A DNA stretch of 64,000 nt, taken from Magallana gigas (Eukaryota). The notes beneath the pieces are model-generated. The model worked only from the letters and a program-made list of their open reading frames with translations, did not search any database and was not told where the DNA came from. Each line of letters begins with the position of its first letter. The first letter of the stretch is position 1. The stretch spans positions 36,518,001 to 36,582,000 of the forward strand of contig NC_088858.1 in NCBI RefSeq assembly GCF_963853765.1, in the 5' to 3' direction. Made by a program: the position numbers and the translations under genes. Below, in pieces: positions 6,141-58,900 of this stretch.

Positions 6141-6453
6141 TTATATAAATAGTTTGGGAGAGTAAAAGTTGAAATTGACACCCAGAGAAAACCATTGTCA
6201 ACCGACGCAAAGCGGAGGTTAAGAATGGTTTTCAAGGGGTGTCAATTTCAACTCTTACCTTCCTAAACATGCACTATATATTTTATTATACTGAAAGTCT
6301 TAATTTTAAAGAAATTTATTCCGAATGGTACTCACATAATTTATGCGCATGTAACCCGTTACCAAGTGTGTTGCTAACGCTGAGGGTAATAGAATGGAAT
6401 GTTAACTGCGTCTAAACTATAATCAGATTTCAGTATTTAACATGAAAGTATAA
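6141..6453 (+). mobile_element. Non-autonomous interspersed repeat with a long internal palindrome (copy 1)
   Basis: Runs TTATATAAATAG...GTTGAAATTGACACCC...GGGGTGTCAATTTCAAC...CATGAAAGTATAA. Colinear with 50092-50455. Confidence 0.8.
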
Positions 6454-6515
6454 TAAGGAATGATAACATATGCATACAAGAAATACAAACAATAACCATT
6501 TGGCAAAAACAATTT

Positions 6516-7453
6516 TTATACAACTATCTGACAAGTTCCATAACCGGTGTGTGTCAAAATCTCTTCCACTTGATGTAGTGCTTGTGCAAGGGATGCGTCG
6601 GCTGTTAGATGCATTGGTTGACAGGAGTAGCCTACAGAATTAAACGGATTTGATACACGGTTATTTAAACCGTAGAGGCTATTTTTAAAAGTGTTTTTAA
6701 ACATTTTATGAACTTTTATGATAAAGTACGATGTATGCATGATTTTAACGATTCAAGTTTATATGTTCCCCCAAATGAAGCATTCTTTGATACATTTGTT
6801 TCCTTTGCACTCAGATATTTTATTCAAAAATCCTTACTACAAACAAAAACCACCTTGAATAACAGTACTAATTGTTTTACCTGGAGCACAGTTACAGTGG
6901 TAAGTATGAAGAGAATGGCCCGGCAGGTGGCAGGGTTGTGATACGTTCTGGTAGGCGGAGCAATACTTGCCGTGATAGTCCGTCACACAGCAATGAGTGG
7001 AGGGACAGTCGGGGTCTGACGAACATTCGTTCCTCAGGGCACCCTACATGGTAACATCTCATTACATTGGTCACAGAAACAAGAAAAATACAGTATCCCA
7101 GACGGTCTACAGTCCCAAGACTGTAGAATTTATTCAAAGACAATGTTAATCACGTGTGTGTAAAATGTTTTGCATTTTTGTCCAAAGATTATATTGTCAT
7201 ATATATTGCACAGATTCACACGTGTTCGATCTTGCAATTGAGAATTTCCATTCCATAAATGACAACGTGAAATCTGCATGTAATAACTATTTACATGTCA
7301 ATTTAAATTGATATGGTATATATTTTTCTGCAAAAAAATAGTTAATTTTAAAGATGTTTAAAAGAAAAAAGTAACTTAAGAAAAAAAAACCCACGAACAT
7401 ACCATGACAATGCCAAGAGTAATACAAAAAGCGAGTCCGGTGAGGCAATGCAT
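6516..7453 (-). CDS. Secreted cysteine-rich prokineticin/astakine/MIT (colipase-fold)-like peptide, 109 aa
   Basis: Exons 7453-7403 (MHCLTGLAFCITLGIVM, donor GTATGT), 7043-6881 (GALRNECSSDPDCPSTHCCVTDYHGKYCSAYQNVSQPCHLPGHSLHTYHCNCAP), 6631-6516 (GYSCQPMHL...GYGTCQIVV*). Cys spacing C-x5-C-x4-CC-x8-C-x9-C-x11-CxC-x5-C-x29-C matches the prokineticin pattern. Confidence 0.85.
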
Positions 7454-8762
7454 TCTGTTGCTAGAAATCTTTGATACCTTCGATCTTCAGCTGGAACTCT
7501 ATTAAGTCTGGTGGGTCTTATCAAGAGGAACAGGCAGTGTTGGAACTCTATTCTACGTAATACTTCGTGATACTGGACTGTTAGGTTAAAATCTAGATTG
7601 GGACAAAAGATCACTCGACCACGCGTACGGTGCCAACGGAATACGGATATTAAATGTCTTAGTTTAACCTTTAAAAAAGCTTTGCTTTGGGAATCGAACA
7701 ATTAAAAAAAACTACATATATTGCAGTCCGACTTTATAATACATTCGGATATTGAGAGGAATCTGCCAAAATAAAATATACAGTACATGTATATTATATC
7801 ATAATTTTAATTCGATTCAAGTTCTCTGAACTTTTAGATTTAACCTAGTAAAGTATCTTAAAAATAATTAGCATGTGTTTTCCCCACTGAACGTTGTTAA
7901 AAAGAATTTCCTGGGTTAAAATGGCACGTACCGTATCTCGAAATTGTGCCTTAGATAAACTCAAAATTCATAGTGACAGCATTATGCGATACAATTTTCT
8001 CGGATTTTAAAATTATTTTAAAAGCATTGCTCCAATTTTTTAGCACATATTTGACAAAAATTGCTAAACATATTTGTATTTGATTGGTTGAGAAATAAGT
8101 AGTGCGCTGTACAGTAGTTAAGGTATACCAACCCTCGGACAAGAAAGGTAACTCTCAATCGGATCAAGAGTCATAGGCAAAAAGTTCCGTCAAATTTCGT
8201 CTGCAAGGTACGCTTATACGATTTCTAACTTAATTACAACATACATTGACAAATAATCGGCATGCGATATTATTTAGGTGTTCCGTTTCAATATAATGTA
8301 TCCTCTGGGTTAAAATTAGAAAATGCTAACAAGCTTTTTATCAAAAAGAAGAAACATTGATACATGTAGTTCTACATTTATATGGCACACTTTTTTCATC
8401 CTAAAAAAGATAAACGATTTATACAAAATTATTTGTTTATTGAATACAAACTACAACATAAAAATAATTAAGTACCGATTTATCAACATAAGTGCATCAA
8501 GCACATACCGAATCAGTCTGTACAAATAAAAAAATATGATTATCTGTATAAAAAATTATATGTTTGAAAAAAAATAAAAATTTTAAAAATATGCATTTTT
8601 CTGTGCTTGTTAATTCTAAACAAAAGATTTTTTATGATTGTTGTTAGGGAAAAAAGAAATGAAAACCGTATAACAGTAATCTTGAGGGTATTTTTGTCAC
8701 ATTAAAATATTCAAGTTGAAACAGGATGACTTCATGAACATGGTGTCTGACGGTTTTTAACA

Positions 8763-8925: not shown

Positions 8926-11900
8926 TCAATGGCGACATACAATGACTGGGACGGACGAATGGTGGACAACGTAATCGCTCACACTCCCTAAGATAGTCCG
9001 TCGGATTTTCCCGAGACCTCGTGAGGCAATGATTATCATGGTGACCCCTAATTCTTCCGACTTTTGGATGATTTGCTCTCCGGGAATACCGTGGGCTCGT
9101 ACAACGTTTCCTTGGACCTGAAACAATAAGTGATATAGCTATATGGATATTGCCTGGAACAATAAGTGATATAGCTATATGGATATTGCCTGGAACAATC
9201 AGTGATATAGCTATATGGATTTTGCCTGGAACAATCAGTGATATAGCTATATGGATATTGCCTGGAACAATCAGTGATATAGCTATATGGATATTGCCTG
9301 GAACAATCAGTGATATAGCTATATGGATATTGATTTCGTCAAGTCATTCTTGAGCTAAGAAAAAGAAGTATCTTCGATTTAGGAAACCTCTTCATGCATA
9401 TTCAATATGTGAATGAAAATTAAAAATCAATCATTTCTGATAAGCGTACTATATAAATCGGTACGTTTCCCGGAGCATTCAACAATATCTTGATGTACGG
9501 ATATTGACTTCGCATACCCATTCTTGAGATGAGAAAAAGCAGTATCTTTGACTTAGGACACTGCTTCGTGCATATTCAAAATGTGAATGGAAATTAAATT
9601 GTTTATTTACTGATAAGCGTGCAATATCAGTTCTAAGAAACACATTACCCCGGCATCCATGAGGATTGCATCTAGTTTTTTAATGGCGACTTTAGCTTTC
9701 TCTTCTTCTTCTTTATAAGCCATGTGAACCATGGTGGGATCAACTGGCATCCAGTTAGCTGCAAGAAAAAGAGACAAATGAAATAAACATTATCTAAGCA
9801 CGCAGGTAGCTAAAGCAACAACTAATAAATGCAAGCAGGTGATGACACAACAAAACTTTAGCTGTTGACGGAATAGCGAGTTCAGGTTGTATATATGTGA
9901 GACATATGTGAGATATGCTGCATATGCATAGTTACAATAAAACAAATCGCGTATCTTGGTGAAGATAGGGAATGCTTGCAATCGGTCACAGATTGAAAAA
10001 AAAAATATCAGAAACGGAATGGATTTCAGCTCCAATCGCTTCGTAGCCAAAATATTCAGAATACAGCTCTGGTTTTCATTTGGTAACCCCACCACCTCTA
10101 TTAAAAAAATGTGTAACTCAATTTGACGCATGAATGTACGACGTAGTTTAAATAATATTTGTTCGCATTAGCTTACCTTATCACATTGTGCAATACTATG
10201 AAACCTACTTACGATATCAAAACCTACTTGTCGATACAATGACTGCAATTTAGTGCATTGAACCGACTATAATTGAACACGTGTATCACAGATAAAGGAA
10301 ATATGAACCGATGGTGTGGAAAAACATGAAGCTGATGATTACATTTAAGGCCGCTATTTTGTCGTTTACGTTATGATCAAGCTATTTTCAGATTATACTT
10401 TAATGAGTTTCAGAATTAGCCACATAACGGCACCAGATATTTGTTTCCATGTCTCGTGTTTTCAGAATATACGCCCAAGTTAGACACCTAAAACATACTG
10501 CGCCACCCAATAACGAAGCGACTGACGTAAAAAACAAACAACTAAGTAGAAAGATAGAAGTGGGAGACGGCGCAGAAACTTCGACAGAAGGAAATAAGGC
10601 TCGTTATAACGAGTATCTTATATCCTGCAGACTAAGTGTAATTGGGGCTTTAACCCCCCAAGCTTCGTTACATGTTAACTTATTGAACTATATGGATTTG
10701 GAACATAAAGTAGCTAGGCAGAAGCTTGCATATAATTTTTTTAATCATATCTATCATCAATCCCAAAAGTGAGAAAAATCTGCCGTTGAACGTATCAAAA
10801 TTACATAATCTTTAGACAGGGTAATTTAGGTAATTTACTTTAGTATAATCATTTCAAAAATCACAGGCATGTGGTGTTATATCAATGGCTATGTGTTTAC
10901 GACTGTTTATCATGATGGAAATTAATTACTTCCTCGTTATTTATGAAGCTGCGTATGTAAAATGAGAATGAAGCATAACGTTAGATTTGTAATTTTTCCT
11001 TGTTTTTTTTTCTCAAAGGCATATAACAGCCGTTTTGTTAAGATGTATCTACAAAACATCTTTAGATAATTAGTCTTTCTGCTGAGTGCTCTCTTAAACC
11101 ATAATAATGAACCATGTAGGCATGAAACAATGTAAATGTATAATACAACATACATACACACGTCATGAAGACTTCAGTTTCCAAGTCAAGGGTTTCTGAT
11201 CCGCTCCTCTCTACATGCATACATACATTTATGTAGAGCGCAGCGGATCACTAATGACGACATACAACTCTACATACCGGTATGAAAAAAGAAAAATGAA
11301 AACGTATAGCTTTGGTTGGAACTAAAATATTACAGAGGTAATCCTAGAGCAATGGAGCAGAGAAATATGTAGACCGAAATATTTGACGTTTTCCTGGCCT
11401 TTTTTTTACGATTCTGATATTTCACAAACATATATCGTAAAATATTAAAACCGTTAAAAACAAAAGCCGCCAGGAAAACGACATAGAAATATGGAGATAT
11501 GCGCCTCTCTCTTCTTATAGAAGAAAATAAGGTTACAGCAACTTACATCCGAATGACGATGAATTTCTGTGATCTGTGACGTGGAGGACAATGACCTCAT
11601 CACGGTCTTTTTGATACATATTTTTCGCAAACCCTAAAATAAAACAGAAATCGAGGAAAAGATTGAGAAAAAATAAAATTAAGCAACTTTTATTATTATG
11701 CCTATTTGATACTTTCAGTTGTTTTGATGCTGGATAAGTGAACAATCGTATGCATTGTTTATAAGTAAAAAGCACTATTCATAAAATCCGGTCTTTATCA
11801 ACAATGCGTTTAAACCTCGTAACAACGCCGGAAGTATAGGCCTATATATGCGCCTATATCAACATTCACACCACGACCCGATGAAAAAAAAAATACTTCG

Positions 11901-12001
11901 GAAAAAAATCGATAGAAGTACTTACATTTCAACGCCCCTTCTGAATATTCACTGCCATCCATAGCAATCATTATTTTTCGTTTATTTACTGAATCCGCCA
12001 T
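8926..12001 (-). CDS. Universal stress protein (UspA-like), paralog A, 154 aa
   Basis: Exons 12001-11926, 11633-11547, 9758-9649, 9117-8926 (intron phases 1,1,0). N-terminal IAMDGS; C-terminal ASRGLGKIRRTILGSVSDYVVHHSSVPVIV. Confidence 0.92.
9117..9332. repeat. 36-bp minisatellite, 6 copies, overlapping the USP-A exon 4 acceptor
   Basis: Unit CCTGGAACAAT(A/C)AGTGATATAGCTATATGGATATTG starts at 9117, 9153, 9189, 9225, 9261 and 9297. Confidence 0.95.
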
Positions 12002-12136
12002 TGCCTAAAATATTAATGTGCACTAAAAAAAATGAGGCCTGCACTAAGACGAGATAATTTAATCTACTCTACTATCACTTTACAACATTCAAATGACACC
12101 GGGTCACGCTTCGATGACAACCCGAACAGGCATAAT

Positions 12137-12161
12137 GGAAAACTCCAGAAAATACCAGAAT
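12137..12161. promoter_or_regulatory. Imperfect heat-shock element (five nGAAn/nTTCn units) upstream of USP-A
   Basis: gGAAa-aCTCc-aGAAa-aTACc-aGAAt, with GAA at 12138, 12148 and 12158 in exact 10-bp phase. Confidence 0.35.
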
Positions 12162-12294
12162 GCAGTCAGTGTGTATGATCGCTTCGCGCATTGAGTTTTT
12201 TAATCAATAAGCTGGTGCCCCGACAGGGAAGTATCGGCTTTGGGTAAATGTATTTAAAACTACAAACAACCCCGAGTCAATCGTGGAGCTATCT

Positions 12295-12427
12295 NNNNNN
12301 NNNNNNNNNNNNNNNNNNNNNNNNNNNNNNNNNNNNNNNNNNNNNNNNNNNNNNNNNNNNNNNNNNNNNNNNNNNNNNNNNNNNNNNNNNNNNNNNNNNN
12401 NNNNNNNNNNNNNNNNNNNNNNNNNNN
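12295..12427. other. Assembly gap (133 N)
   Basis: Run of N. Confidence 1.
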
Positions 12428-12864
12428 CATCATTTACAGTTGTTATAATGATCATTTATCTTTGGATTATTGTTAATTATTATTATTAATGATAAAAAGC
12501 CCACAAGGAAATAATTCTAATTTATATACAGTGACAGTGTATATATAAGTATTTGTGTATGTATATATGATCTTGTTTTTGTGAACCCATCGTGAATCCA
12601 TCATAATTAACCTGTGTAGAAACCGTTAAAACAATTAAAATACCTTGCTCGGATTAGGCGAACTCGACCTTTTTATGTTTTTTTTTTTTTTTTTGGGGGG
12701 GGGGGGGGGGTTATTTCTTTAAGCAGTGAGCTATTGAAATCTAACATATAACGGTTGTTTTCATCTATTTTTTGGATGAATGTACAAAAGGACAATTTGT
12801 ACATGTATTTACGACCCATTGAGCCCCATTGATTTCAGTGGTCTCCTTTTATTTCTTTTCCGAT

Positions 12865-13226
12865 CAGGCACGTAGCATCGTTTTTTAAAGTGGGGGGGCC
12901 AAACTCATCCAAAAAATCTTGACAAGCAAAAAAAAAAAAAGGTTACTTTCTTCCAAATCCTGACATTCCTTATCTGGGGAGGGGGGGGGGGCACAAACTT
13001 GTATACCTTTAACTTCAATTTGGCTCTTTATGTCCTTATTTTCAATTCAATTTTTACATGGCCCCATGAAAGGGAGGGGGGGGGGCAACTCCTTGTTAAT
13101 TTAATTTTTTGTATGTAAATTTAAAAAAAATATTTGCTGCGCAAAAAGTGGGGAATGGGGAGCCCCCCCCCCCCACACCCCCCACCCCCCGTGTCCCCCC
13201 CCCCCCCCCCCCCGATGCCGTGCCTG
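12865..13226 (+). mobile_element. MITE with CAGGCACGTAGCATCG TIRs, poly-G/C tracts and 5-bp TSD
   Basis: 5' end CAGGCACGTAGCATCG, 3' end CGATGCCGTGCCTG, TSD CCGAT at 12860-12864 and 13227-13231. Partial copies at ~46800-46965 (3' end) and ~52258-52675 (5' part). Confidence 0.8.
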
Positions 13227-15529
13227 CCGATTGATTATACAATATAGATATATTACTTCGTTACATTACAAAATTTTGAAGGAATGTGACGTTTATGATA
13301 CATATATTCAACAAAAGGATTATTATGACTGTTATACAATTATTAACGAGTTGATTATTACAGAACATTCCTCTGATGATGAATAACACTTTGATACGCA
13401 GAACAAGGCACGCGCGGATCTAGATAGAAAGTATCTGTGACTTATCAAAATGTATAATATACAAATCACCACGAGAAAAAAATACAAGAGCCGATATCGA
13501 TTAGTCAGTGTATATGGGAGAGCTTAAAATAATGATGCAGTGTGCTCGTGAAAAACGCAGCAATTAGGGACATTGTATGAACACTCATTGCATTAATTTG
13601 TTTCCACTAGGTAATAACTTTCTTTCATATCTACTGTATTATTAATCGAATTCGGTCAGAACTTAGATATGCATGTTTAAATTGTGTTATTGGGTATTTA
13701 TTATAAGTATCTCGTTTGACAATGTGTGCTCAAAATTTTAAACAAATGAAAGAAATCATGTAAGTCTCAACTGAAACTTTTTATTATTTTATGTCTAATA
13801 ATAACAGCACTAACGAGGATAACAAATTTTTCATATAGTGCATCAACTGGTTGCTGTGTCAACTACTCTTTGATATCAACACATTATCCTGCACGACTTA
13901 CACTGCCTGAATAAATTCGATTATTTCTTAAAGAACAACACTTTTTAAAGTTTTTTTTACTTTCATAATCAAATAATTTACTGTTAACTTGAGTGACTTT
14001 TTCCAGGTGTGTTATTCCGTCTCAACTCAATATAGTGCTAATATTAACATCATTCATCTCCAAAAGTATATATAATATATAGAATATTCCAGTTTGCTCA
14101 CTAGGAAATTAACAAAAATTTAACACGATTATATTCTGCAGATTTTCTCATGCAATAAAAAAACTTTAAAACAAATTTGAAATTTCAAAATACATGTACC
14201 AAAGAGTGCGAATTGCTATCTATTTGAATGAACTTGTTTTTGTGCTAGCAATGGGTTAAAATGCGCGACTCTGTAAGTGATTCGAGGGAAGTTAATTCTT
14301 TAAACAAAGAAAACGGCCCGCGGCTTGTACAGATAGACGTTTAATAGGAAACAGGGTTATTTTCGGCCCGTGTTATTGACGTCCTCCTACAGTAGAAGAC
14401 GTCTCAATTCCGTCTTGAATTTATCCCAATTCAATTGAGTTTAAAGGGAAGATAATTTGATACAGTGAAATATGTCCAATCTTAAATTCTCCTGCTGACG
14501 AGGGAAAAACAGCGAAAATAAAACGGTGGCAAATATTTCCCTGCATACAATATCATTTTTTTGTACAATGTTAATATTTGGTAACAACTGAAAATATTTA
14601 TTTTGTCATAACACTTCAAGACACCAGGAATCAAAGAAACTTCAATAGAAACATTTATTTAGAACTGCTCGAAGTATAAATGGTACGTGTTCAAAATATA
14701 TTTTGACTGTCGACAATATAAATTTCCAACTGAAAGGCGACAATGTTTAAAACAGAAGAAACAAGTGAAAGTTTGGCATGTCCAGAGGAAACAAACACAG
14801 AATATCGCTGCATATCAACCTAATTAAATCGCAGTCTTCAAAAACAGAAATATTGTTTTGGATAATACATGACAAGTTCAGACTTCTAATAAATTTCGCT
14901 CCCCAATGTTTGATTAGAAACGTAAGAGATGCAGGAGATGAAAAGGGCAGACACAAAGCTGGGTCTGACAATATGGATTAAATGGCTTTCTTGCGTGTTG
15001 TAATAGAACGGTTCACTTTACACAAATTGCACTGATTTTAAGAAAGTAGTTGATAACGTAGTCAGAGATGTGTTAAGGAAGAGGATGGACCACAAGGATT
15101 ATTACGGAAACCAGGCAAAATGAACATCAATCACAAAAAATCACTAAGCTACCAAGTAAGGCATGCAAGATTTGTACATAGAGAGTTCGTAAATCAAATT
15201 TTGAAATACACATGTACAGGGCATTGGCTCTATGACTTCTATGGAGACTACAAGAGGAGAAAAGAGGAAGGGGAGGAGAAAATAGAGGAGAAAATAGAAA
15301 CACAAAGCGAAAGAATGTTTTGTCTAACTGGGTTTAAAGGAAAGAGAAGACAGATAACAGATCTGTATTTTCAAATTGCGTTTAAAAGAGTCTAAGCTGT
15401 CAAAAAATGAAACTTTCAAAAAAGAAATATCACCAACAGACATATATACTTGTATGAAGACAAAATATACACACTAGATATACACTTCGGCATTTCAGGT
15501 GTTATCACTTTTTTCCCTTGAAACATTTG

Positions 15530-16991
15530 TCAGTGTAGATTGCTACAGGTACATTTGAATAGAACATACTGGCTGACGCTTCCCAACACTGTCCGTCTGA
15601 TGACGCCCATTCCCCTGGTGCCAGTGACCACGAGGCATGCGTCGACCTCGGAGGCTCTTTTCACAATTTCCTCTCCAGCATCACCATATAATATGTTAAA
15701 TTCTCCGCTTATCTTCAAAAGAATTAAATGTGATCCCAAATGTCACATTTTTAAGTTATATTTTTAAAGAATCATACTTGCGTACTCCTAAATGCTGGCA
15801 ACTACCTTTCTTTTATGGACAAAAATGACAGCAAATGTTTGGCAGAGAAGTACAAAGCCGACTTTTTTTTTAATCTTTTGTGAAATTGATAAGTGAAATT
15901 TTTTTTCAAAACTAGACTTTTTTACGATTAACAACATTATTGAATACATTTTATGCATCAGCTAAAAATTGCTTCAATCTACTAAATGATACATGTAGAA
16001 GAATATACCCATAATGATTGAAATAGTTTTTTGAACAAATATTTTTGCACAAATTATGAATTTTGGTGAACGATTTTATTCTTTTGTTAAGCTCAGCACA
16101 TGTCTTGTTTTTATTTACCAAATTATTAGATTCTTACTTTATTGTCTTTTAAAAAGGTCTCCATTTCAGCAGAGAGCGTCTTTGCTTTGTCTTCTTTCTC
16201 ATTGTGGACCAAAACAAAGAAGTGTTGATCTCCGGGTACTACAGGGTCTGTATTGTTGTTTTAAAAAATAGATCAAAAGTGATTACCATGTAAGATTTCA
16301 TGCAGATGTATTTACAGAGCAGATTATGAAAAGATTCGTGAATAAGTTATGTATACTGTATTGTTTGATTCATACCAAACAGAGAAAAATGAGAACAATC
16401 AGTTGAAGTACTTGACCTCTGTAACATCATAAATAAAGTTATATTTGAATAGATTTTGCAGATGCTCATGTCATGCTTTTAGCAATAGCATGCAATTTTA
16501 TAAAAAGGTACATGTATAGTATAAAATGGACTTGATAATCTGCAAACTTTGAAGTTGCCTTTAGTTTAATTCATTTGTATTATAACGTCATGATAAGACA
16601 GAGTACAGTAGCAGTTATGAAATTCTAAATATTCTCATGCGACAAAACCACGATGTTAAACATCTAGAGGATCGTTACCGTCGGCTTTACATTGATTTAA
16701 ATACGTTAGAACTTGACGTTAGCTTGTCATTGCTAAAAAATTTATGCAGTTTATTTATAGAGAGGAACTTTAACTCACCTTTGTTTTCAAACCCGTACCG
16801 ACTGTCAACGACGTGTGCTATGTATAGTCTGTTGTCGTCTCTGTGAAGGTTCTGTAGGTACCCTGTGTGAAATAGGTCGTGAAGTTTGTTTGCACCACTT
16901 TGAAAGAAAATAAACGAGAGCTTTGCATAGACTTACATTCCAAAGCGTCCTTGGCGATTTTGCTGCCATCATATGCCAGGAGAACTTTCAT
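15530..16991 (-). CDS. Universal stress protein paralog B; last exon apparently frameshifted near 15559 (143 aa as read; possible pseudogene, allele or assembly error)
   Basis: Exons 16991-16937 (MKVLLAYDGSKIAKDALE), 16862-16779, 16247-16138, 15712-15530. The frame reads GSVSQYVLFKCTCSNLH*, while a shifted frame gives the USP-like SNVPVAIYTDKCFKGKK* ending at 15505. Confidence 0.85.
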
Positions 16992-17984
16992 TTTAGTCGT
17001 GGAAGCAGTCAGTCGATACCTTAGATTGTCATTCGTTATACGCAAATATACAACCTTTTTACACACTGATGTGTACTGATTTTTTTTCTGCGTAATGATT
17101 TTATGTTGCGTTTCACAAATGTATTAAAGTTAAATGACCTAGCCGTGAAAGCTCGTGAGTCCTCCTCATTATTTCTATCTACTTACGATAACCCTTTGAG
17201 GTTCAGAAACTCAAACTATAACAACGATCATAGCATGACGATGAAGAGCAAATCTGACCAGACAAATCAAATTCATTTTCTGTTTTGATCTGTCAAGTGT
17301 ATTTTGGTATTGTCAAAGTCGATGATCATATAATTATATTGAAATGAAAATAACTCTATAAATGTAACCTGAAGATTCATTGCATGCATCTAAAACATTA
17401 ATCTAGAATATGATTTAAAATACCATTGTTTTTCATAGATAATTGGGAATATAATAAAACAAGCATACAGTTCAGTTTATCAAGAGACCCAACCGTTGTC
17501 TGCCAGCAAATACGGTTGAACAGTGAGGACTTTAGCAGTGATATCGTATTAGGGGTCAGTTGAACTTGTTCCTAATAGTGATAACTAAATTTGATGTCTG
17601 TTATACGTCCATTTCTACTATCTTTTTCCTGCATGACCATGTATGTATTCTTCTGACGAATTTTATTCATGTTAATCTTGTATATATGTTTCCCTTGTAC
17701 CAAAAATTGATTTGAGAGAATAAACTGAACATGAATTATTATTTTTATTGTTTTGAGATGTAAAACTCAGAGCAAAGCATATGTTTCTAGGAAAGACCAC
17801 AATAAAATTGTAGTTGACAATTCAATTAAGAATCAAAGTATTAACAATTATTAGTATATTCAAGTATATTCTTTATTTATTTAAGGAACAAAAAACAACA
17901 GTTTCAAATTACTTGTATATCACCAAAGAAAAAATATAATAAATATTTTCTTTATTTATTTTAAAGTATGGAGGTTCATGCAAA

Positions 17985-19699
17985 CTACTGATGTTGGCAA
18001 ACAATAACTGGGACGTTGGAATGATGGATGACGTAATCACTGACACTTCCTAAAACAGTACGCCTGATGGTTCCTAGGCCACGACTTCCGGTCAAAACTA
18101 AGTCGGCCTCAACGTCGTGAGCTTTTTTAACGATTTGATGTCCAGGATGACCGAACACTCGCACAACCTCACCATCAACCTAGCAACAAGTAAAAATCTC
18201 TTTAGAAACGATAGTGTCTTGAACATTTCAAAATGTCAACTTTTTTCATTGTTCTATTGACATTTAGCAACAGAGCGATAAATATTTATTTTACTTGCCT
18301 GATTTTTGCTGATAAAGTCATTCATTTCATCCATTATTGCTTTGGCTTTATGCTCCTCTTCCTGGTATGCTAATTGAATTAATTCGGGATCACCTGGTAT
18401 TATTGACGCTACGAAAGAGGTAATTTGAGCACATTTTATTGCAAACTTTTACAAAATGGGATTGTGCACGAGTTCTGAAAACCTAATTCGCCCTGTGCCA
18501 GGTTCAAAAGAGGTACAAATGATTAAAATAATTTTTTTGATATCGATAATCAACAAATAGCTTTTATTACATAAATAACAAATTTCTCTGTTATATGTAA
18601 TTGACTGAAAATCATTATTGTCTTCACAAACGAACAATAAACGCCAAAACATGTTCAGATTTGATACTAGTAAGGTTTTAATTCAACTTCCTCCTCTTAT
18701 TCAACTTTTCAAATATAAAGGTCTTCTAATATAAAAATCAACAAGATATGTTATTCCATTATTAGAATTATCACACACAAAAATTCTAACACTTCTTTCC
18801 AAATTCTTTGATTGATGTTACAAAGAAATGATACTTTTTACAGACTTTCCAAATTTAACAAAATTAATGCAATTCTGTCACCCCCCCCCCCCAACATAAT
18901 AACAAAATTTTTTTTGAAAAATTTAGTTGGATTTATACAATAATTGGTTAAAACGTAGTTAAAAATTTCTCCTAATTTTACCCGAACTATCAGATTATTT
19001 GTAATGGGAACCACAGAGAACAAAGTAAATGCTAGTGAGCTAGCAAACAACAAATAAGAATTTAGTAGCCACCGAATAACTTGTGTACTTTAGTACAGTA
19101 TTTGATAAAATTGAATTTGATGTTGATTTGTCCTGCGTATCACCGTGGTGCAGCAAACAGTGATAACCTTTAACTACAGAATTGATAATGTTATACAAAG
19201 CAATAGATAAAATGCTACAAATAAAACGCAGATTAAACTTTTTATTTTCAGGTCATTTTTCTTTCAAATTTCAAATACGTCAATTAAGGTCATTCTCCCA
19301 AAACAGATACTAAGTATGTTTTAAGTTAGAATGAACTGTACTTGCTGTTGTAGGCAAAGTTATGAAGATGATCCGTGACATGGACTAATATCACTTTGTT
19401 GTCTGTCTTGTGTATATTTTTCAAGTACCCTAGAAAAAGGAAAGATATTCGATATCTGTAAACATAGTTGAAGAATGTTTACACGATTATATGTCAATGT
19501 TTATGGTTCACATCTTATAATTTTACTTTCAAAAACAAGTATGAAGAATATTCATCTATATATAAAGAAAAGCCTTTTATGAACTATTTATTTTTTTACA
19601 AATTTAATTAAGTAAATAAATAACTGAGTTTCAATTATACTCACATTGCAAAGCTTCCTTAGAAAACTTGCTTCCGTCGATGGCTATAACAACCTTCAT
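17985..19699 (-). CDS. Universal stress protein paralog C, 147 aa
   Basis: Exons 19699-19645 (MKVVIAIDGSKFSKEALQ), 19429-19346, 18408-18299, 18179-17985 (VDGEVV...GSRGLGTIRRTVLGSVSDYVIHHSNVPVIVCQHQ*). Introns 2 and 3 start with GCAAGT. Exon lengths 55/84/110 match paralog B. Not found by the ORF track. Confidence 0.88.
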
Positions 19700-22600
19700 A
19701 TTTTTAAAAAATAAATTGAAGACGGAGCCCCTAACACAACGTGGTGATGAGTACGTTACCTCTTATCTTAGCTGACACAATACAAACAAGGTATAAAACT
19801 ATGTCCAATAAAATATGTCTCATGATATCTAAATTCATATCTTTGATCAATGGTATTGTTAAATAATATATATGTATTTTGAATAAATGTGCTATATATT
19901 GTAACTTTAATGTTAATTGGCATTTCAATTCGAGTGCATTTCTAATGTGTTTTAAGTAAATGTATTAGTCATATGAAGATTGTTGTCTCAGAGGCTAATT
20001 CAAATTACCAACAAAACTAATCATGACAGAGGGAAAAGGAGAGTTTAAAGTTTTGCAGTATTAAAATTTGATTCCTCCAGATGTTGCTACTTATTGTATT
20101 TTCTATTGATATGTGTGTACAAAAAAAGCCATGTTCAAAAACTCAATTCAAAATAGATAACTTTAAATAAAAAATAGCACATCGTTTCATTGGGAGGGGT
20201 TATTTCTCTTAGTTTTACAAATGTGTGGTCACAAAATGATTATGGATGTTTATTTGGAAAATGCAAGCAATTCTCGTTGATGAATGTACAAAATTAGACT
20301 AATTTTGGTGTAAAGAGAGAATAAATGAATGATGATCACAAGTAAATGTTTTCTTCACATATGCAAAATTCAAAATATAAGTTGATAGTATCTTTAAAAC
20401 ATTTGTTGTAAACAATATTTATCTGTGTGCTGATATCTTTTGAAAGATCATAAGATATGTGTACAGGGATCAAGAAAAATCCTTTTTGTTTTCTTCTTTT
20501 TTTTTTTTTTATAAATAAAGTATGAATGTTATAGATGTTTTTATGGACCCTTACTGAAATAAAAAGGTAAATGAACTCCATTGCATATAATTTTGCAACT
20601 TCTTTACGCTGATACCCAAATAAAATTAAATTGAATTCTCTTTATAATTTTATATAAAATTATTTTTGTTGTAAGACATTCACTTGAAAACATTTTGTGT
20701 AATTTCTTAGTCCTTTAAGGGCCCGATACCTTGATTCTCACGATTAAGGTGAGAGAAAAAACGAATCTAACCTGCCAGCGAAGAAATTTGCAGTCAAACT
20801 TGTATGCAGCAAATGACGAGGAATTAAATTATCAAGGGTTGTATGGAATTGAGTTATTAAATGCAAGCATTTCATAACAGTATTTATAAAAAAATAAGTG
20901 TTACCACTGTTGTGTAAACACACCACAAGAACATTATGTGATTGATTTTTTTTTTACAATTTCAACATTATTGATTTATATTTTCTTTGGTTGTCACCAG
21001 TGGAACTATAAACAACACTTTTTATTTCTGTTAATATGTACCAGCTGTAGCTTTACAAGATATGAATCAATCCGTGCTTTTCCCCCTTAATTCTTGCTTG
21101 CAATGTATACAATGAATATAAATCGCTACCACAGATGGTGTAAGTCATGAGTCTTCCTTAAAAGATATAGACAAAATATATCCTTGTGTGATTTATTTTC
21201 AATTTTGGATTTTGTAAGATTTAAATATTTTCCCATTGCTCTATTGTCAACCTTGCATAACGTGAACAAAGTTTTATAGAGCAAGGAAATAATAAAAAAA
21301 AATTGAAGCAACGGGCCAATGTGGTTAATTCTGTGTTTCAATACCCTTTAATCTTTAATTTATGAATACAGTAATTCATGGTTTTGATATGGAAGATACT
21401 GATTATATTCATATTTTACTTATTGTTCAGTGTCAGAAATCATATTTTTTGTTTTCCAAGCATCGCTAAGGTATTTAGAAAACTATAGCTATCTGTGGTT
21501 GCATGCATGTTGCTGTCTATTGCTAGTCAGTTGTAGTAAGTTTATCAAACTAGGAACAAATTTAACCTATTAATTCAGTGTTCAATGGAAAGCAAAAATC
21601 GGAGAAATCTAACCCCATTTTAATGGAGGTTGCATTTGGAAAAAAGATCGTAATTAAAGCAATTATAAAAATCATTTTCATATTCTTATCATTCAGCAGA
21701 AAAAGTAAGTACATCAGATGTGAATTTTAGAGACTGTCCCCCTCTAGACATGTCAGTAAATATCCAAATTTTACATGAAAAACAATTCAATTTTTTCTTT
21801 TACCAAAGAAAACAAGCCTCCACTTTTTTCTGGTTTATTATGCTAAATAAAATATAAAATTTTAAAAATTATCTGAAATAAAAATATTTTCCCACTGTAA
21901 ATTGTTTATGTGAAAAATTATAAATTGCAAATTATAAAAAGAAAAGTAAATGGTAATAAGAAACAATGATTCTTAAACTTATGACATCTATTGCACAGAC
22001 TATGGTGTTAAATGTAACAAAAGATAATGTATTTTTATGCAATCTAAAAACTATCAATATTGGATCATCCTGTGCCTGTGTAATTCATTGAATAATATCA
22101 TTGTACATGTAACTTGCAGTGTTATGTACGTAGAATATTCAAAGTTCTTGGTATTATCATAAACCCTGATAAAGAATTAATTCTTTAAACAAGTGCTATT
22201 AAATGGCAAAATCATATTTAATTGTTATGCACATAACTTTCCAGTTTAATGTCACGTATTTTTTTAGTTTCAGAACAAAAGAGACTACTTTGAAAAGTTG
22301 ATTTTTTTAATGTTTATTTCTTTGAATTTTTTTCGGGTCGACTATTTGATATAATTTTTTGTAAATGTATGAATGTCTATGTGAAAAATATATATTGCAA
22401 AACATAAAAAAAGTAAATGGTTATAAGGAGCAAAAAATCTATTGGGCTCTGGAGTTAACACAGGGTTCTAATAGCATGTATTGAAAAAGTATTTTAAAGT
22501 TTAAAATGTATAGTTTTACTGCACCTTGAAGTAGTAACTCATATCTGCAGAAAATTAGGTAATAAATAGTTGATAGCATGATGCATTAGAGGTATTCATG

Positions 22601-23149
22601 TCAAGTAGGCAAAAATATGCAATTTTATGAGAAAGTATGGTTCTTAACAATTCAACGAACCCATTATATGCTATTCACAAGCCGATACTTTTACCACTGG
22701 GCTACGATGATAAAAACCACATCGATTAGTACAAACACTTTAACAATACATTTCTTTGTTATTCAAATGATAAGTTTCAATAGATTTTTTAAAATCTAAA
22801 ACTATCAATATTCATAGATCAACCTGTGTCTGTGTAATCGATTGAATAAAATGATCACAACTTGCAGTGTTATGTAAGTAGAATGTTGAAAGTTCTTAGT
22901 ATTTTTTGCTTTCAAGATATATTATAAAACCCTGATAAAAAATTAATTTTCTAAACAAATGCAAAATAAATGGCAAAAAGATATCTAATTGTTATGTACA
23001 TAAATTTCCAAATGGAAGTCACGTATGTTTTTAAATTCAGAACAAAATAGACTATTTCGAAAAGCTGAATTTTTAATGTTTGATATTTCTTTGAATTTTT
23101 TAGGCTTTGTTCTTTCAGATCATCAATGTAGGTGAAACATCTTAAATAC

Positions 23150-23680
23150 TGATTAGATCATACAGGATTAAAAAACCCACTTTAGATTAGCAACATATTG
23201 ATGTCTGTAGCAAAGACGAGCCACATTATAGACCTTTCACCAAGTGGTACAAAAAAAGGGCATCCCAACAATTTCTATGTGAACAACCTGTAGGCCAGCC
23301 GATCAATCCCCTGTGTTTACTTTGTACAAGGCTGTTTCTCATTGGATGTTATCTGTAAACTCAGTAATATGAATAATTAACAGGAGAAACACGTTCCATC
23401 AATAACCAACGCAGTGTTAGGAAGCAATCGTCCACAGTGTTCAAGCCTTTAGATACCTAATTGCAACTATAATCAGGAAAGTGATTCCACCAAGGCTAGC
23501 ATTTGCTCATGTTGTGGAAGTAAATATAATTTGTTTATTAAATATTCAAAGGGCAAGTGGTCCTTTTCATCCTCCAGTCTTCCAGATTTTTCTTTTTTTT
23601 CTCTCTTTCTTTGTATACCATGATCGATATAAATCGATATTAGAACAAAACTTTTCAATAGGATTGTACTAAATGTGACC
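23150..23680 (-). pseudogene. Possible decayed DDE transposase fragment (Harbinger/ISL2EU-like)
   Basis: Broken frames give LPNTALVIDGT...ITSNEKQPCTK...RGLIGWPTG. This loosely recalls the FPNxxxIIDCT...TYSNYKHHNT...GLIGITP motifs; there are many stops. Confidence 0.25.
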
Positions 23681-25833
23681 TTCATCTATAATTAATATGA
23701 ATTAAATGTTTTACGTTGTAAGAATTACCATCACGTTGGCGCCAAATCTATCAGTTATATGTAAGATGATGTTGCCTCCATGTGGAGTGTTTTCTGTGAT
23801 TTTTGTATTATTGTCCTTGGACACCCACCTTGATTGTACAAAAATTTTTATAATACGTATCAATTTCATTGGGATGGAATGGTACTGTTAAATGTAGGAG
23901 GCTTCAAGCCTTCACTTTTGTTTGGCATTCGACACTTACCGCTGACATTTCCACATCTTATGTAATGCATGCTTTTAGCAAATAGGCATATGCATAGCCA
24001 TATATATCCAATGTCTCTCTACATTTTTATCTTATTGCACAATTCTTGATAAAATGTATGAAAGACAGTTTAAATTTGTTGTAGACTATGACTATTTAAT
24101 CAAAAATTATACGGAGCATCTATCAATGTTAAAAATGTATGTTATAAAGTCATATTACACTTATATACTTATATTCTTCATGAATGTTTGACTCATACAT
24201 GTACTTGTAGAAAGTATTCCAATTAAGTAATACATTAATACACAGATACTTGAGATATATAAAATATTTAAGTACAAGTATGGTTTTTCAAAAAAAAACC
24301 ACCAATTTTGGTAAATTCTCTTTTGCTTAGTATACCTATGAATTAATGCTGTTCCAAGGAGTAAAACTATGATTTAGTGTTTTCCCAAACTATAAGCCCT
24401 ATGGGGAAACTGAAAAACAATATTAAGATGTATTGTTCCAATTTGATCGAGTTATCGTGACTTTCTCTGTTTGGCTTCTGTGAGAGATTCAGTCTGAATC
24501 GCTTTGTTAGTTATTAGAGTAAAAAGCTCATAAAGACGGAAAAGGAACGAACGAATGAACACGTACGGAGAGCAATTAATAAGTCAAGTTATCTTAATGA
24601 AATATTATCAATTATTCAATTATTACAACTCTTTTCATCTTCGCTGCCTAATACCGGTTTATTTGTTATTGTTTAGTAAATATCAAGCCAAATGCAGGAC
24701 TAACCCCTGTTTTTTCACACATCTCTCCAAATACATATATGGCTACAAATATACATGGTTACATCTCGTTGATATGCTATTATGATATCCCTATAGTGAC
24801 CTTGACAGAGAACTGCTGTTACAGTGTTTGCAAACACGATAACTTCCCATACTGTAAATAGATTGAGGCAGTATCTAAAGTGTGGTTTGTGTTTAAGACT
24901 AGAATGGAAATGTTTAATATGAGTGACTTCTTAAGCAAGTTTTTGATTTCCACACATCTAACTATGTACACAAAATTGAAAGATCAAAATAAAATTGGAC
25001 TAGTTAAGTTGATTTCTGAAGAAAAAAACCTGGAAATGTATCTATTTACACGTTACGAACGATTGACAGCACACGAAAACGTATATAGCATTAGATCATC
25101 GGAATTTCCTAATAATAAAATATATACCCTCAACTTAAAACTACACTAGGGTGTATTATTAGGTACAGGGTATATATAACGTCAGGTTTCTGTGGTCTAG
25201 TAATGACTCGGGGAACAAATAAAAATTTATAGAAAAGTTTATTAATTTATCTAAAATACAAAACATTATATTGTTGAATATATACAAAATATATATTGCA
25301 AAATTTATTTTGCGTATTTAAACAAGTTTTATAAGCAAAAAAAATATTTGCGTAAAATTTTACTTGAAAAATCGGTAATACAACATCAAAAAATCAAATT
25401 TGCATTTAGCAAATGTCGGGGTATTTATGTCCCGAGTTTGTAACTCATGCATGCATATGAAACTTGAACTAATCAAGCCTAGAGCTAAAGCTTTTAGTCC
25501 GGCAAACAAACATACAGAGACCGTAAAAAAAGCAAACGAACAAAGACTATAAACACTGACCGATTTCACAGATCTACAGTTCTATTTTCACGTTGAAATA
25601 ACTACATTATGCTTCATGAGATTGTGGAATGGTTATACGATCATTAAAATAAGTAAAATATCCCAAGCAAATCCCTCGGAAGTGCCTGGGGTTAATAAGT
25701 CTTACTATTGTTTCTATTCAGAAATCAACTCCTTTATGATTGAATTTTATTCTGCTTTATTGGTCAATCGGTGTTATTCCATCATCTTGTTGAGCTGCAT
25801 GGCTTCGTTCTTAGTTGCGTAGGAAGGATGAAC

Positions 25834-55909: not shown

Positions 55910-58900
55910 ATGATGTATACCCTCTGTCTCCTATTATTATTTATTGCATGCTACTTAATACAGGATAGAATTGCAGCCCAAGGTAAGATTACTCACTTGC
56001 ATGAGACCAAGTGAAAATACTAACCACGCGCGGATCCACAATTTTTTTTCCCAAGAACGAGGTTCGAGAGAGAGTTTTTGTTTGTTTGCCATTTTAAAAG
56101 TAATTTTACAATGCGAATGAATAACTTGATAAGTTCCATAAGACTGAATTTTCCAGAAGAGGGGGTTGAGGGTATGGACTCCCCTCCCCCACTTATCCCA
56201 TGCATGATAGCTATTTGAATCTTTGTTTTACATGTTCCATCCATGAGCATGCTTGTGTCAATGACATGTTAACATTTAAGGTCGCCCTTGCTCCAAGTTA
56301 TCGTTTGGTCCGGGAAACATTGTATGTCGCTGCAATGCCTCATATTGTGATACAGTTGAACCTATAGAGCCCCTGACGTCTGGAAGCTTTGCTCTGTACA
56401 CGTCCAACAGCAATGGAAGTCGATTGGTAAAAAGCGTGGGTAGCCTCTCCAAATCTACAGCGGGTGGTAAGATGCTAGCTTCTGTTTATTTATTTTCATC
56501 TTGTGTTTATAATCCATTGTTTTCAAGAAACGTTACCTGTTTTTAGATAAACTTATTAAATAACTTCATTGGGTAGATATCGCCTTAATAAATTAACGTT
56601 TATTGTGATTTACCTATACTTTCACCATCTTGGTTGCTGTCCATTTGTAACTCTTTTTTTGAAGTTGTGGTTAGAATAGACACAAACACTAGCTACCAGT
56701 CTCTGTTTGGTTTTGGCGGGGCTTTCACTGATGCTGCAGCCATCAACATAGCTAATTTGTCATCTGGCGCGGCAAATTACGTCATTGACTCCTATTACGG
56801 GCCCCAAGGTAAGCGGTTGATGTACTTGATGTTTACGTCTCAAAAAGAGTTAATACCAATCGAGCTTCATATACATGTATGTCGTAATACTGTGTTTCCA
56901 ACAATGTATATCAGCTTAATTGCACCCCCATTTGCCTCTCCATAAAAAAGTTTCCATGCATGTACATGAAGGTGTAGTTTGACATTTCTTGGTATTAAAA
57001 ATTAAAGAAACTATAAAATACAAAAACATTTGTTACAAGTCACAAAAAGATTAGATATTTGTTTACAATCCCTTTTCAGGGATAGAGTATTCCGTCGGCC
57101 GGGTGCCTATAGGAAGCTGTGATTTCTCTACACATCCCTACTCGTATGATGATGTTGACGGAGACTTTAATTTGACCAAGTTTCAACTCGCCAAAGAAGA
57201 TTTGACTCTAAAGGTGCTTAATTAAATTACGTCGTTTCTTTGTATGCATATTGCCGTTTTACGACACAGAAACACTGCATTTTATTTGAAATGACAAGTA
57301 AAGACAATGATAGTAAATAAATTCATAAAATTAATCATTTATCGACATAATGTTTAGCATTTTCGTAATTATTAATTACACTTGACCTTTAAATAACCAA
57401 ACATGAACCTTATATACACCTTTTAATCAGATTCCACTTATTCAAAGAGCGATATCTGTCAGTAAGAGGAACATCTCGTTTTTCGGAAGTCCTTGGACAG
57501 CACCTGCATGGATGAAGACGAACAACAACCTGACTGGGAAAGGCTTTATACGGGGAGAGGCGGGCAACTCTTACCATAAAGCCTGGNNNNNNNNNNNNNN
57601 NNNNNNNNNNNNNNNNNNNNNNNNNNNNNNNNNNNNNNNNNNNNNNNNNNNNNNNNNNNNNNNNNNNNNNNNNNNNNNNNNNNNNNNNNNNNNNNNNNNN
57701 NNNNNNNNNNNNNNNNNNNNNNNNNNNNNNNNNNNNNNTATTATTAAAATGAAATAATATAAAACATATTAAAACTTTGTATAACGCTTAGTATTTCCTA
57801 ATTCCGACATGGTGCTCAATTAACATTCAAGATTCCTTGATGCATACAAGCAACACAACATCAGCTTTTGGGGACTGACTGCCCAGAATGAACCAACAGA
57901 CGGGAACATTGACCATTTTCCATTCCAGGCCACTGGCTGGACGCCTGAGCAACAACGAGACTTCATTGCCAAGGACCTAGGGCCGACGCTTCATGCGAAT
58001 GGTTACAAGGACATCAAACTAATGATGCTAGACGATCAAAGGCTTCTGATGACATATTGGGCTGACACGGTAATCAGAAAATTAATCTGATTTTAATTAA
58101 GTTCTCTTAGAAATGAGATTCCTTAGCCTTTACCGGTATCTATTTTTGTCAACATTGATTTAGAAAGATCTTTCTTGAATTCGTTTTTTAGGTTAGAAAT
58201 GCAGAAAAATATGTCGTGGGTTTTTTCGGGGGTGTTTTTCTAAATTGCTTTTAATGTTTGTAGTCAATAGAGTTGGCTACTTACAATAAAATAATTTTTA
58301 TTTATCTTTTAATTTATTTATTTTTACATGTATCTTATCAGATTATAACATACTATTGAAATAAAATCTGATTTCTGGTGTTAAACTCTCATTTTTAATC
58401 TAAAGCCTTTTTGAATATGAAAAATCAATTAAAATCATTAATTGATCTTGTTTTATTTTGAAAAAAGATGGATGTATATTTAAGCGTGTAAAATGCCCAT
58501 ACACGGTCGAACAAACTACTGAAAAATTAAAATATCAATAAATCTTATATTTTAAAAAAAAATCATATAAAACAATATGTTTAACGTATCATTGATTTTA
58601 AACCTATTAATATGTTCAATACTTGGAATATGTTGACTCAAACAGGCGTATACATATCAAAACCTGCAAATAGTGTCATTTTTTAGAACTTTAAGGCATT
58701 TTCATTTATAGAGTGGGTCTGTGCTCCATATTTTTCTCATAGTCTAAATAAGGTCTATTGGAAAACAAACCGATTTCAATCAACAAAATAGTGGAGAGAT
58801 GACCCACTATACATTAAAATTATTATTTTGTATCCCAACAATGGAACGTTTTGAAAAAAAATATTTATACAAGTCCGTAAATTCGTGGCCAAAGTCACAT

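Follow-up and report, generated by a model that had tools for sequence, protein, structure and literature searches.

A spliced oyster gene for a putatively secreted ten-cysteine peptide with a predicted colipase fold and a long last loop

Does a stretch of fewer than a thousand nucleotides of oyster DNA hold a spliced gene for a secreted peptide of the prokineticin/astakine type, and is that peptide new? The question is raised by the minus strand of positions 6516–7453 in a 64,000-nucleotide stretch of the Magallana gigas (C. gigas) genome (NC_088858.1, positions 36,518,001 to 36,582,000; this whole stretch is the window, to which coordinates refer unless another locus is named). An initial annotation made from the letters alone had placed here a ‘hidden’ gene of three short exons, encoding a candidate novel secreted factor with an unusually long last loop and a His-rich body. 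We find that the gene is real and spliced, and consider it highly likely that it is the published Cragi-prokineticin 3, a secreted, ten-Cys peptide of colipase fold that belongs to a clade of mollusc proteins sharing the long loop.

Splicing of the minus-strand open frames read across window positions 6300–7700 yields a coding sequence in three exons (7453–7403, 7043–6881 and 6631–6516) that together form a 330-nucleotide open frame of 109 amino acids plus a stop, with a GT donor and an AG acceptor at both introns. Translation reproduces the signal peptide and ten Cys of the initial annotation. As delimited by RNA contigs and translation, exon 1 (7403–7494) carries a 5′ untranslated region at about 7494–7454, followed by 17 codons (MHCLTGLAFCITLGIVM) that encode most of the signal peptide, and is separated from exon 2 by a phase 0 intron of 359 nucleotides (7044–7402, GT..AG). 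Exon 2 (6881–7043, 163 nucleotides) runs from G18 to the first base of the G72 codon and contains Cys 1–8, a conserved CHLPGH motif and an NVS sequon (N50–S52, 6947–6939). The second intron (6632–6880, 249 nucleotides, GT..AG, phase 1) interrupts the codon of Gly72, after Cys8 and before Cys9, and exon 3 (6499–6631), again placed by RNA contigs and translation, encodes Cys9 (6623–6621), the 29-residue last loop, Cys10 (6533–6531) and the stop at 6518–6516. A TATAAA hexamer on the same strand (6520–6515) overlaps the TAA stop, 14–16 nucleotides upstream of the cleavage site, and is likely to act as the poly(A) signal.

Support for this structure comes from comparing four RNA runs (X1, X7, X11 and X21) with the gene stretch. 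The candidate runs hold about 0.26–0.32 of the sampled words from the 1.2-kb stretch, the expectation for a spliced mRNA of about 385 nucleotides. One contig of X7, an oyster metatranscriptome (word depth 105), and one of X11, from a different study and with a different species label (word depth 238), each span all three exons, both junctions and poly(A). Their blocks begin at 7494 (X7) or 7490 (X11), ends that need not equal the start of transcription, and extend to 7402, then from 7042 to 6880 and from 6630 to 6499, after which poly(A) follows, appearing as a T run on the plus strand. The joints skip 359 and 249 bases and read CT..AC on the plus strand; since moving the cut by one base gives an equally good fit, they correspond to the 7403/7043 and 6881/6631 junctions that had been predicted, which are thereby borne out by spliced contigs in both runs. 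The poly(A) junction lies at about 6499–6501, and the contigs’ ending in poly(A) after about 6499 leaves a 3′ untranslated region of only some 17 nucleotides. X1 contributed low-depth unspliced pieces on the gene stretch and nothing more; these are probably DNA or pre-mRNA. A single unspliced X1 contig of low depth (2.2) has T>A at position 7017 in exon 2, where both well-covered RNA contigs match the window; the change probably reflects an error or allelic variation.

That the three exons should be a chance arrangement of open frames, or a pseudogene, would sit well with the silence of X21, a large poly(A) run that was sampled to about 1% and gave zero reads on the peptide exons. Against this stand the spliced, polyadenylated contigs from two studies, the intact reading frame and the orthologues that retain all ten Cys across bivalves; the contigs and orthologues together rule the possibility out, and we give it next to no weight. 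The three exons form a real, expressed and compact gene with an mRNA of about 385 nucleotides.

The gene was overlooked by a prokaryote-style open-reading-frame track, yet it is hidden in no other sense. Its spliced product is identical at every letter to XP_011457034.1 of C. gigas and XP_052698480.1 of C. angulata (library entry P0001), and a search with exon 2 returned the 109-residue P0001 at 100% identity over 54 amino acids. The two entries go by public names that mislead, ‘neurogenic locus protein delta-like’ and ‘EGF-like domain-containing protein’; the fitting description is that of a prokineticin/astakine-type peptide of colipase fold. An older model, K1PG00 (346 amino acids), mistakenly joins universal-stress-protein (UspA) exons of the upstream gene to exons 2 and 3 of the peptide gene.

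As to novelty, Réalis-Doyelle et al. (2021, Mar Drugs 19:452; PMC8398477) describe five ‘Cragi-prokineticins’, and their supplementary table gives Cragi-Prokineticin 3 as XM_011458732.3. We connected this transcript to the protein entry by accession arithmetic, XM minus XP being 1698 in this C. gigas series, an offset checked on CgCD9 (XM_011432003 in PMC9797820, XP_011430305 in PMC7890607). Applied to XM_011458732 it leads to XP_011457034, and through this offset we very probably have Cragi-prokineticin 3 before us, a level of confidence that covers the identification and the colipase-fold reading jointly. The paper remarks on the ten conserved Cys and on the missing AVITGA. In its readable text there is no discussion of the helix in the long last loop, of the histidines that are conserved or of orthologues across the bivalves. 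A literature text search with the accession numbers of the peptide gene returned no paper, and a search with toxin-style names returned only papers on spiders, ticks, snails and nemerteans, none of them on the bivalve orthologues. The gene was thus already known, both as a RefSeq entry and from the 2021 publication, and its designation as a candidate novel factor has to be withdrawn in favour of a correct rediscovery.

What kind of domain does it encode? A profile of 12 family members, run against all PDB sequences, matched exclusively colipase-fold chains, namely the C-terminal domains of Dickkopf 2 (Dkk2-C, E 1.8e-5) and Dickkopf 1 (Dkk1-C, E 3.8e-5), Bv8 (E 1.7e-4), U33-theraphotoxin (E 2.9e-3), colipase (E 8e-3) and MIT1 (E 0.04). 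A first structure prediction, in which the signal peptide was kept and the alignment held 12 sequences, reached a predicted local distance difference test score (pLDDT) of 65 with no fold match below E 0.1, and was replaced by a model of the mature domain built on a 23-sequence alignment, with a pLDDT of 87.9 and a predicted template modelling score of 0.70. With the latter, Foldseek against the PDB returned Dkk2-C (1.5e-4), MIT1 (6.2e-4) and Dkk1-C (9.3e-4), each at a probability of 1.00, and VIA-align gave Z scores of 6.2 for Dkk1-C (root-mean-square deviation 2.5 Å over 68 residues), 5.9 for MIT1, 4.9 for Bv8 and 3.9 for colipase. All matches in Swiss-Prot and among the AlphaFold DB clusters are Dkk-C domains, prokineticins, MIT-like toxins or colipase, and they include U9-ctenitoxin-Pr1a and ‘prokineticin domain-containing’ proteins of molluscs, brachiopods and amphioxus; the ten best matches of an Atlas feature search all fall in the same clan. 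Turning to the astakines, hhalign of the peptide family against the oyster astakine family gave 94.8% probability (E 4.9e-8) with Cys1–Cys9 in register, and BLASTP of the peptide against the oyster astakine CgAstakine gave E 7e-6. The colipase fold is therefore well supported by the model and the profile comparisons, and the assignment to the prokineticin/MIT1/astakine type in the initial annotation is upheld by the PDB profile, the AlphaFold model and hhalign alike.

Since Dkk1, Dkk2 and Dkk4 C-domains lead the profile, Foldseek and VIA-align (Z 6.2) results, with alignments that run through the entire domain, long last loop included, and since the C9–C10 loop of Dkk1 exceeds that of prokineticins, the peptide might instead be a modulator of Wnt signalling, a lone domain of the Dickkopf-C type with an LRP5/6-type receptor as its binding partner. 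The margin over MIT1 and Bv8 is nevertheless within noise (Z 6.2 versus 5.9; 28 versus 25 bits), and the peptide is about equally far from Dickkopf C-domains and from prokineticin/MIT1. Dickkopf 1, 2 and 4 are two-domain proteins, whereas the peptide is a single 91-residue domain without a Dickkopf N-terminal domain, and the Pfam models of the Dickkopf C-subdomain are silent. Furthermore, the Dkk1 stretch ARHFWSK, which contains LRP6 contacts, aligns to VTDYHGK in the peptide; the sequence, and with it the contacts, is not kept. The nearest sequence relative outside molluscs is also no Dickkopf, being a spider MIT-like peptide (P0015). We judge a Dickkopf-type role very improbable.

Several results do weigh against reading the gene as Cragi-prokineticin 3 with a colipase fold, and they are best considered together. 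Pfam searches of the exon pieces and of the full protein gave no significant family. The Prokineticin model PF06607 has no match in P0001 at E ≤ 10, P0001 thus staying below its gathering threshold of 21.6 bits, and reaches E 0.04 in just one of 23 family members; the Pfam colipase (PF01114/PF02740), MIT_LIKE_ACTX and Dickkopf C-subdomain models likewise do not match P0001. The HMMER comparison proposed in the initial annotation has in this way come out divided, with the family profile matching Dkk-C, Bv8 and colipase chains and the Pfam Prokineticin, colipase and Dickkopf-C models remaining silent. The disulfide pattern C1–C4, C2–C5, C3–C7, C6–C9, C8–C10 is predicted from the superposition on Dkk1-C and MIT1 only. 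The lack of X21 reads on the exons implies that expression is not ubiquitous; the published tissue pattern is given for the five Cragi-prokineticins jointly (PMC8398477); and haemocyte proliferation has been shown for CgAstakine alone (Li et al. 2016, Dev Comp Immunol 55:179; PMC8398477, PMC9797820).

The Pfam silence is put in proportion by a control. CgAstakine, a functional astakine, scores 20.6 bits against the PF06607 cut-off of 21.6, and this model is therefore insensitive for molluscs; a PF06607 search of the oyster genome gave no match, and the controls were equally silent. Colipase_C reaches E 0.027 in one family member. Hits of Dickkopf_N (E 0.15–1.3) on the Cys-rich stretch and of the Dumpy DPY module (E 0.07–0.13) were rejected as Cys-pattern noise. 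Taken strictly, by Pfam match and AVIT N-terminus, the peptide falls outside the prokineticin family. As far as its sequence tells, it does have what marks an astakine-type peptide, a ten-Cys prokineticin-type domain that is homologous to astakines and is without AVIT.

The precursor consists of an 18-residue signal peptide and a 91-residue mature part. The N terminus is hydrophobic, V and G occupying positions −3 and −1 ahead of A19, and the mature peptide probably starts at ALRNEC, in agreement with the start and the missing AVIT N-terminus noted in the initial annotation, whose counts of nine His in the mature part, an NVS sequon (at N50) and 29 residues between C9 and C10 are likewise all correct. 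The ten mature Cys, at residues 24, 30, 35, 36, 45, 55, 67, 69, 75 and 105, are spaced 5-4-0-8-9-11-1-5-29. The suggestion that the last loop is amphipathic-helical also finds backing, in that the AlphaFold model (mc573056d07fe) places a helix at mature residues 66–82, i.e., protein residues 84–100 (ASLAQALHQVEEILTHT; minus-strand codons 6546–6596), in blocks with a pLDDT of about 81–93. Its hydrophobic moment of 0.37 compares with 0.17 ± 0.08 for shuffles, 1.65% of which reach 0.37, so that the inserted helix, as modelled, is moderately amphipathic.

The long loop and the His richness, which had been singled out as unusual, prove to be conserved across a mollusc clade. An exhaustive HMMER search found 11 representatives and a profile search added further members, so that the family now includes sequences from Crassostrea, Ostrea, Saccostrea, Pinctada, Mytilus, Pecten, Dreissena, Mya, Mactra, Ruditapes, Solemya and Aplysia, along with a few metagenomic or transcriptomic sequences and one spider protein. 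The ten Cys are invariant in all 23 aligned members, and AVIT is found in none of the aligned orthologues. Every mollusc-type member examined (17/17) has the core spacing 5-(3/4)-0-x-9-(11/13)-1-5 and a C9–C10 loop of 26–32 residues, and the long loop ends in an aromatic-Gly-x-Cys motif. In the 23-member alignment, H56, H60, H79 and H91 are each kept by 16–18 sequences, and none of these histidines occurs in the spider protein or in the four Aplysia-type members; bivalve domains have 7–11 His each, and nearly all bivalve members carry an N-x-S/T sequon before Cys6. In a maximum-likelihood tree of 21 domains no branch is well supported, and the topology agrees only roughly with the species tree. 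On these alignments, the long loop and the His richness appear as traits of a mollusc-wide clade and not of this gene alone, and the roughly 20 extra residues between Cys9 and Cys10 are predicted to form an amphipathic helix in the clade.

Two further observations concern this family. The same chromosome carries, at a distance of about 5 Mb, a second, His-rich paralogue with a long loop (locus L002; contig 6, around 31.70 Mb), at 1467–1652 and about 2560–2640 of that locus. Its exon 2 ends ...CGCGSG|GTGAG, with a phase 1 intron in the Gly codon after Cys8 as in the peptide gene, and a candidate exon 3 has a C9–C10 loop of 23 residues ending in MYGLC. In addition, a terminal Gly or Gly-Arg-Lys, the usual signal for C-terminal amidation, is seen in heterodont clams, Solemya and the Aplysia-type sequences (...TIFG and ...VFGRK are examples) but is absent from the oyster, mussel, scallop and pearl-oyster members.

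How does the peptide compare with better-known relatives? One comparison is with CgAstakine (P0031, XP_011414433.1; contig 9, locus L004), also a secreted ten-Cys prokineticin-domain protein of the same oyster and also without AVIT. An identity of the two was considered and rejected: the published quantitative PCR primer of CgAstakine (PMC9797820) has no site in the window; its match, with a single mismatch, is on contig 9, inside another ten-Cys open reading frame. CgAstakine is thus a different gene on a different chromosome, with 28% identity to the peptide over the core. In contrast to the peptide gene, a single exon encodes its ten-Cys domain of 103 amino acids, with no intron between Cys8 and Cys9; its C9–C10 loop has 15 residues instead of 29, and the protein ends in a tail rich in Thr and His. 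Vertebrate prokineticins, Bv8 and MIT1 share with the peptide the fold, the order of the ten Cys and a His-containing motif after Cys6. Prokineticins are however basic, while the peptide is acidic and His-rich; their C9–C10 loop has roughly 9 residues, against 29 here; and the vertebrate proteins have the AVITGA N-terminus, needed to activate prokineticin receptors, that the peptide lacks. The Dickkopf 1, 2 and 4 C-domains, the best-scoring solved structures and profile matches, also exceed prokineticins in the length of this loop. As for the chelicerate MIT-like peptides (Pfam MIT_LIKE_ACTX and Prokineticin), NCBI calls the Ostrea and Saccostrea orthologues ‘U9-ctenitoxin-Pr1a-like’ and one Mytilus orthologue ‘U3-aranetoxin-Ce1a-like’, and the spider protein P0015 has a Cys1–Cys9 spacing identical to that of the peptide (5-4-0-8-9-11-1-5), although the last loop of the spider peptides is short (8 residues in P0015, rather than 29) and they are not His-rich.

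The initial annotation's cytokine, toxin-like and metal-binding functions are all no more than candidate roles. We tentatively propose the following role for the peptide. It would be secreted, N-glycosylated and held by five disulfides, and it may act as an extracellular ligand in the manner of its paralogue CgAstakine, by analogy with the astakines. Its receptor would be other than the vertebrate prokineticin G-protein-coupled receptors, because the AVITGA N-terminus is missing. No prokineticin-receptor orthologue is known in protostomes, according to PMC8398477, citing Mirabeau and Joly 2013.

A role apart from signalling is another reading: the peptide could be a secretory protein of the digestive gland, a colipase-like cofactor or enzyme modulator whose His residues switch its charge at acidic pH. 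Transcripts of the five Cragi-prokineticins, taken as a group, are located mainly in the digestive gland, and also in larvae (PMC8398477, section 2.4.6). In the Atlas feature search, vertebrate colipase ranks first (0.90) and a mollusc cluster, in part with colipase Pfam domains, comes next; spider proteins of the U9-ctenitoxin-Pr1a-like and U3-aranetoxin-Ce1a-like kinds occur in midgut tissue and transcriptomes (PMC5013568, PMC12785369). With 2 Lys+Arg, 7 Asp+Glu and 9 His, the net charge of the mature peptide would moreover flip between neutral and acidic pH. However, neither Pfam Colipase nor Colipase_C matches the peptide, and each comparison, by sequence or by structure, ranks colipase behind Dkk-C, MIT1 and Bv8; a larval peak and male-gonad expression, both reported for the Cragi-prokineticins (PMC8398477), fit poorly with a purely digestive function. 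We regard such a role as possible but doubtful.

The histidines invite a different explanation, in which the peptide is chiefly a metal-binding or antimicrobial one and the colipase fold merely a scaffold for a His cluster. Nine His fall within 91 residues, and four of them, H56, H60, H79 and H91, are those widely kept across the alignment. Cys6 and Cys9 are disulfide partners in the colipase fold, so that H56 and H79, which flank them, could lie close together. Most antimicrobial peptides, however, are not anionic at neutral pH as this one is, and the Pfam searches returned no metal-site motif or family match; we find this explanation improbable. Retaining a ligand of colipase fold as the preferred reading, one may also suppose that the long-loop clade is a functionally distinct branch of such ligands, in which the helix and H56/H60/H79/H91 form a metal- or pH-dependent binding switch. 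We think this unlikely. If it were true, the switch would control the binding of a receptor or partner, for example in the acidic digestive gland, by a mechanism undescribed for prokineticins, astakines, Dickkopfs or colipase.

The surroundings of the gene hold a few other features. Upstream, the minus strand carries tandem UspA exons (8941–26025), apparently in at least three paralogous copies. Two copies of a 12-nucleotide direct repeat, AATAGAGTTCCA, sit 49 nucleotides apart on the minus strand (7552–7541 and 7503–7492), overlapping or immediately upstream of the points at which the RNA contigs begin (7494/7490); the repeat could be a promoter element. A short way downstream of the peptide gene, a 36-nucleotide element (6421–6456) lies outside the peptide mRNA, which ends at about 6499. 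Its word depth is 36,000–50,000 in the three contig-based RNA runs, and the raw-read run gives about 100 reads on each strand; many reads continue into unrelated sequence on either side, and the element is probably a dispersed repeat transcribed elsewhere. Runs of N occupy 12295–12427 (133 bases) and 57587–57738 (152 bases) of the window.

In itself the gene is biologically nothing new, being present in RefSeq and in the published catalogue of oyster neuropeptides and cytokines. The case does show that a small multi-exon gene for a secreted peptide is recoverable from raw eukaryotic sequence, and that the call of its fold, made from sequence alone, was sound. A modestly useful outcome is the corrected description of a misleadingly named protein that is distinct from the studied CgAstakine. 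A few traits of the family, the helical long loop and the conserved His set, are undescribed so far; as a conserved group of mollusc proteins yet to be characterised, the clade that bears them could guide work on cytokine-like peptides and on the digestive gland of bivalves.

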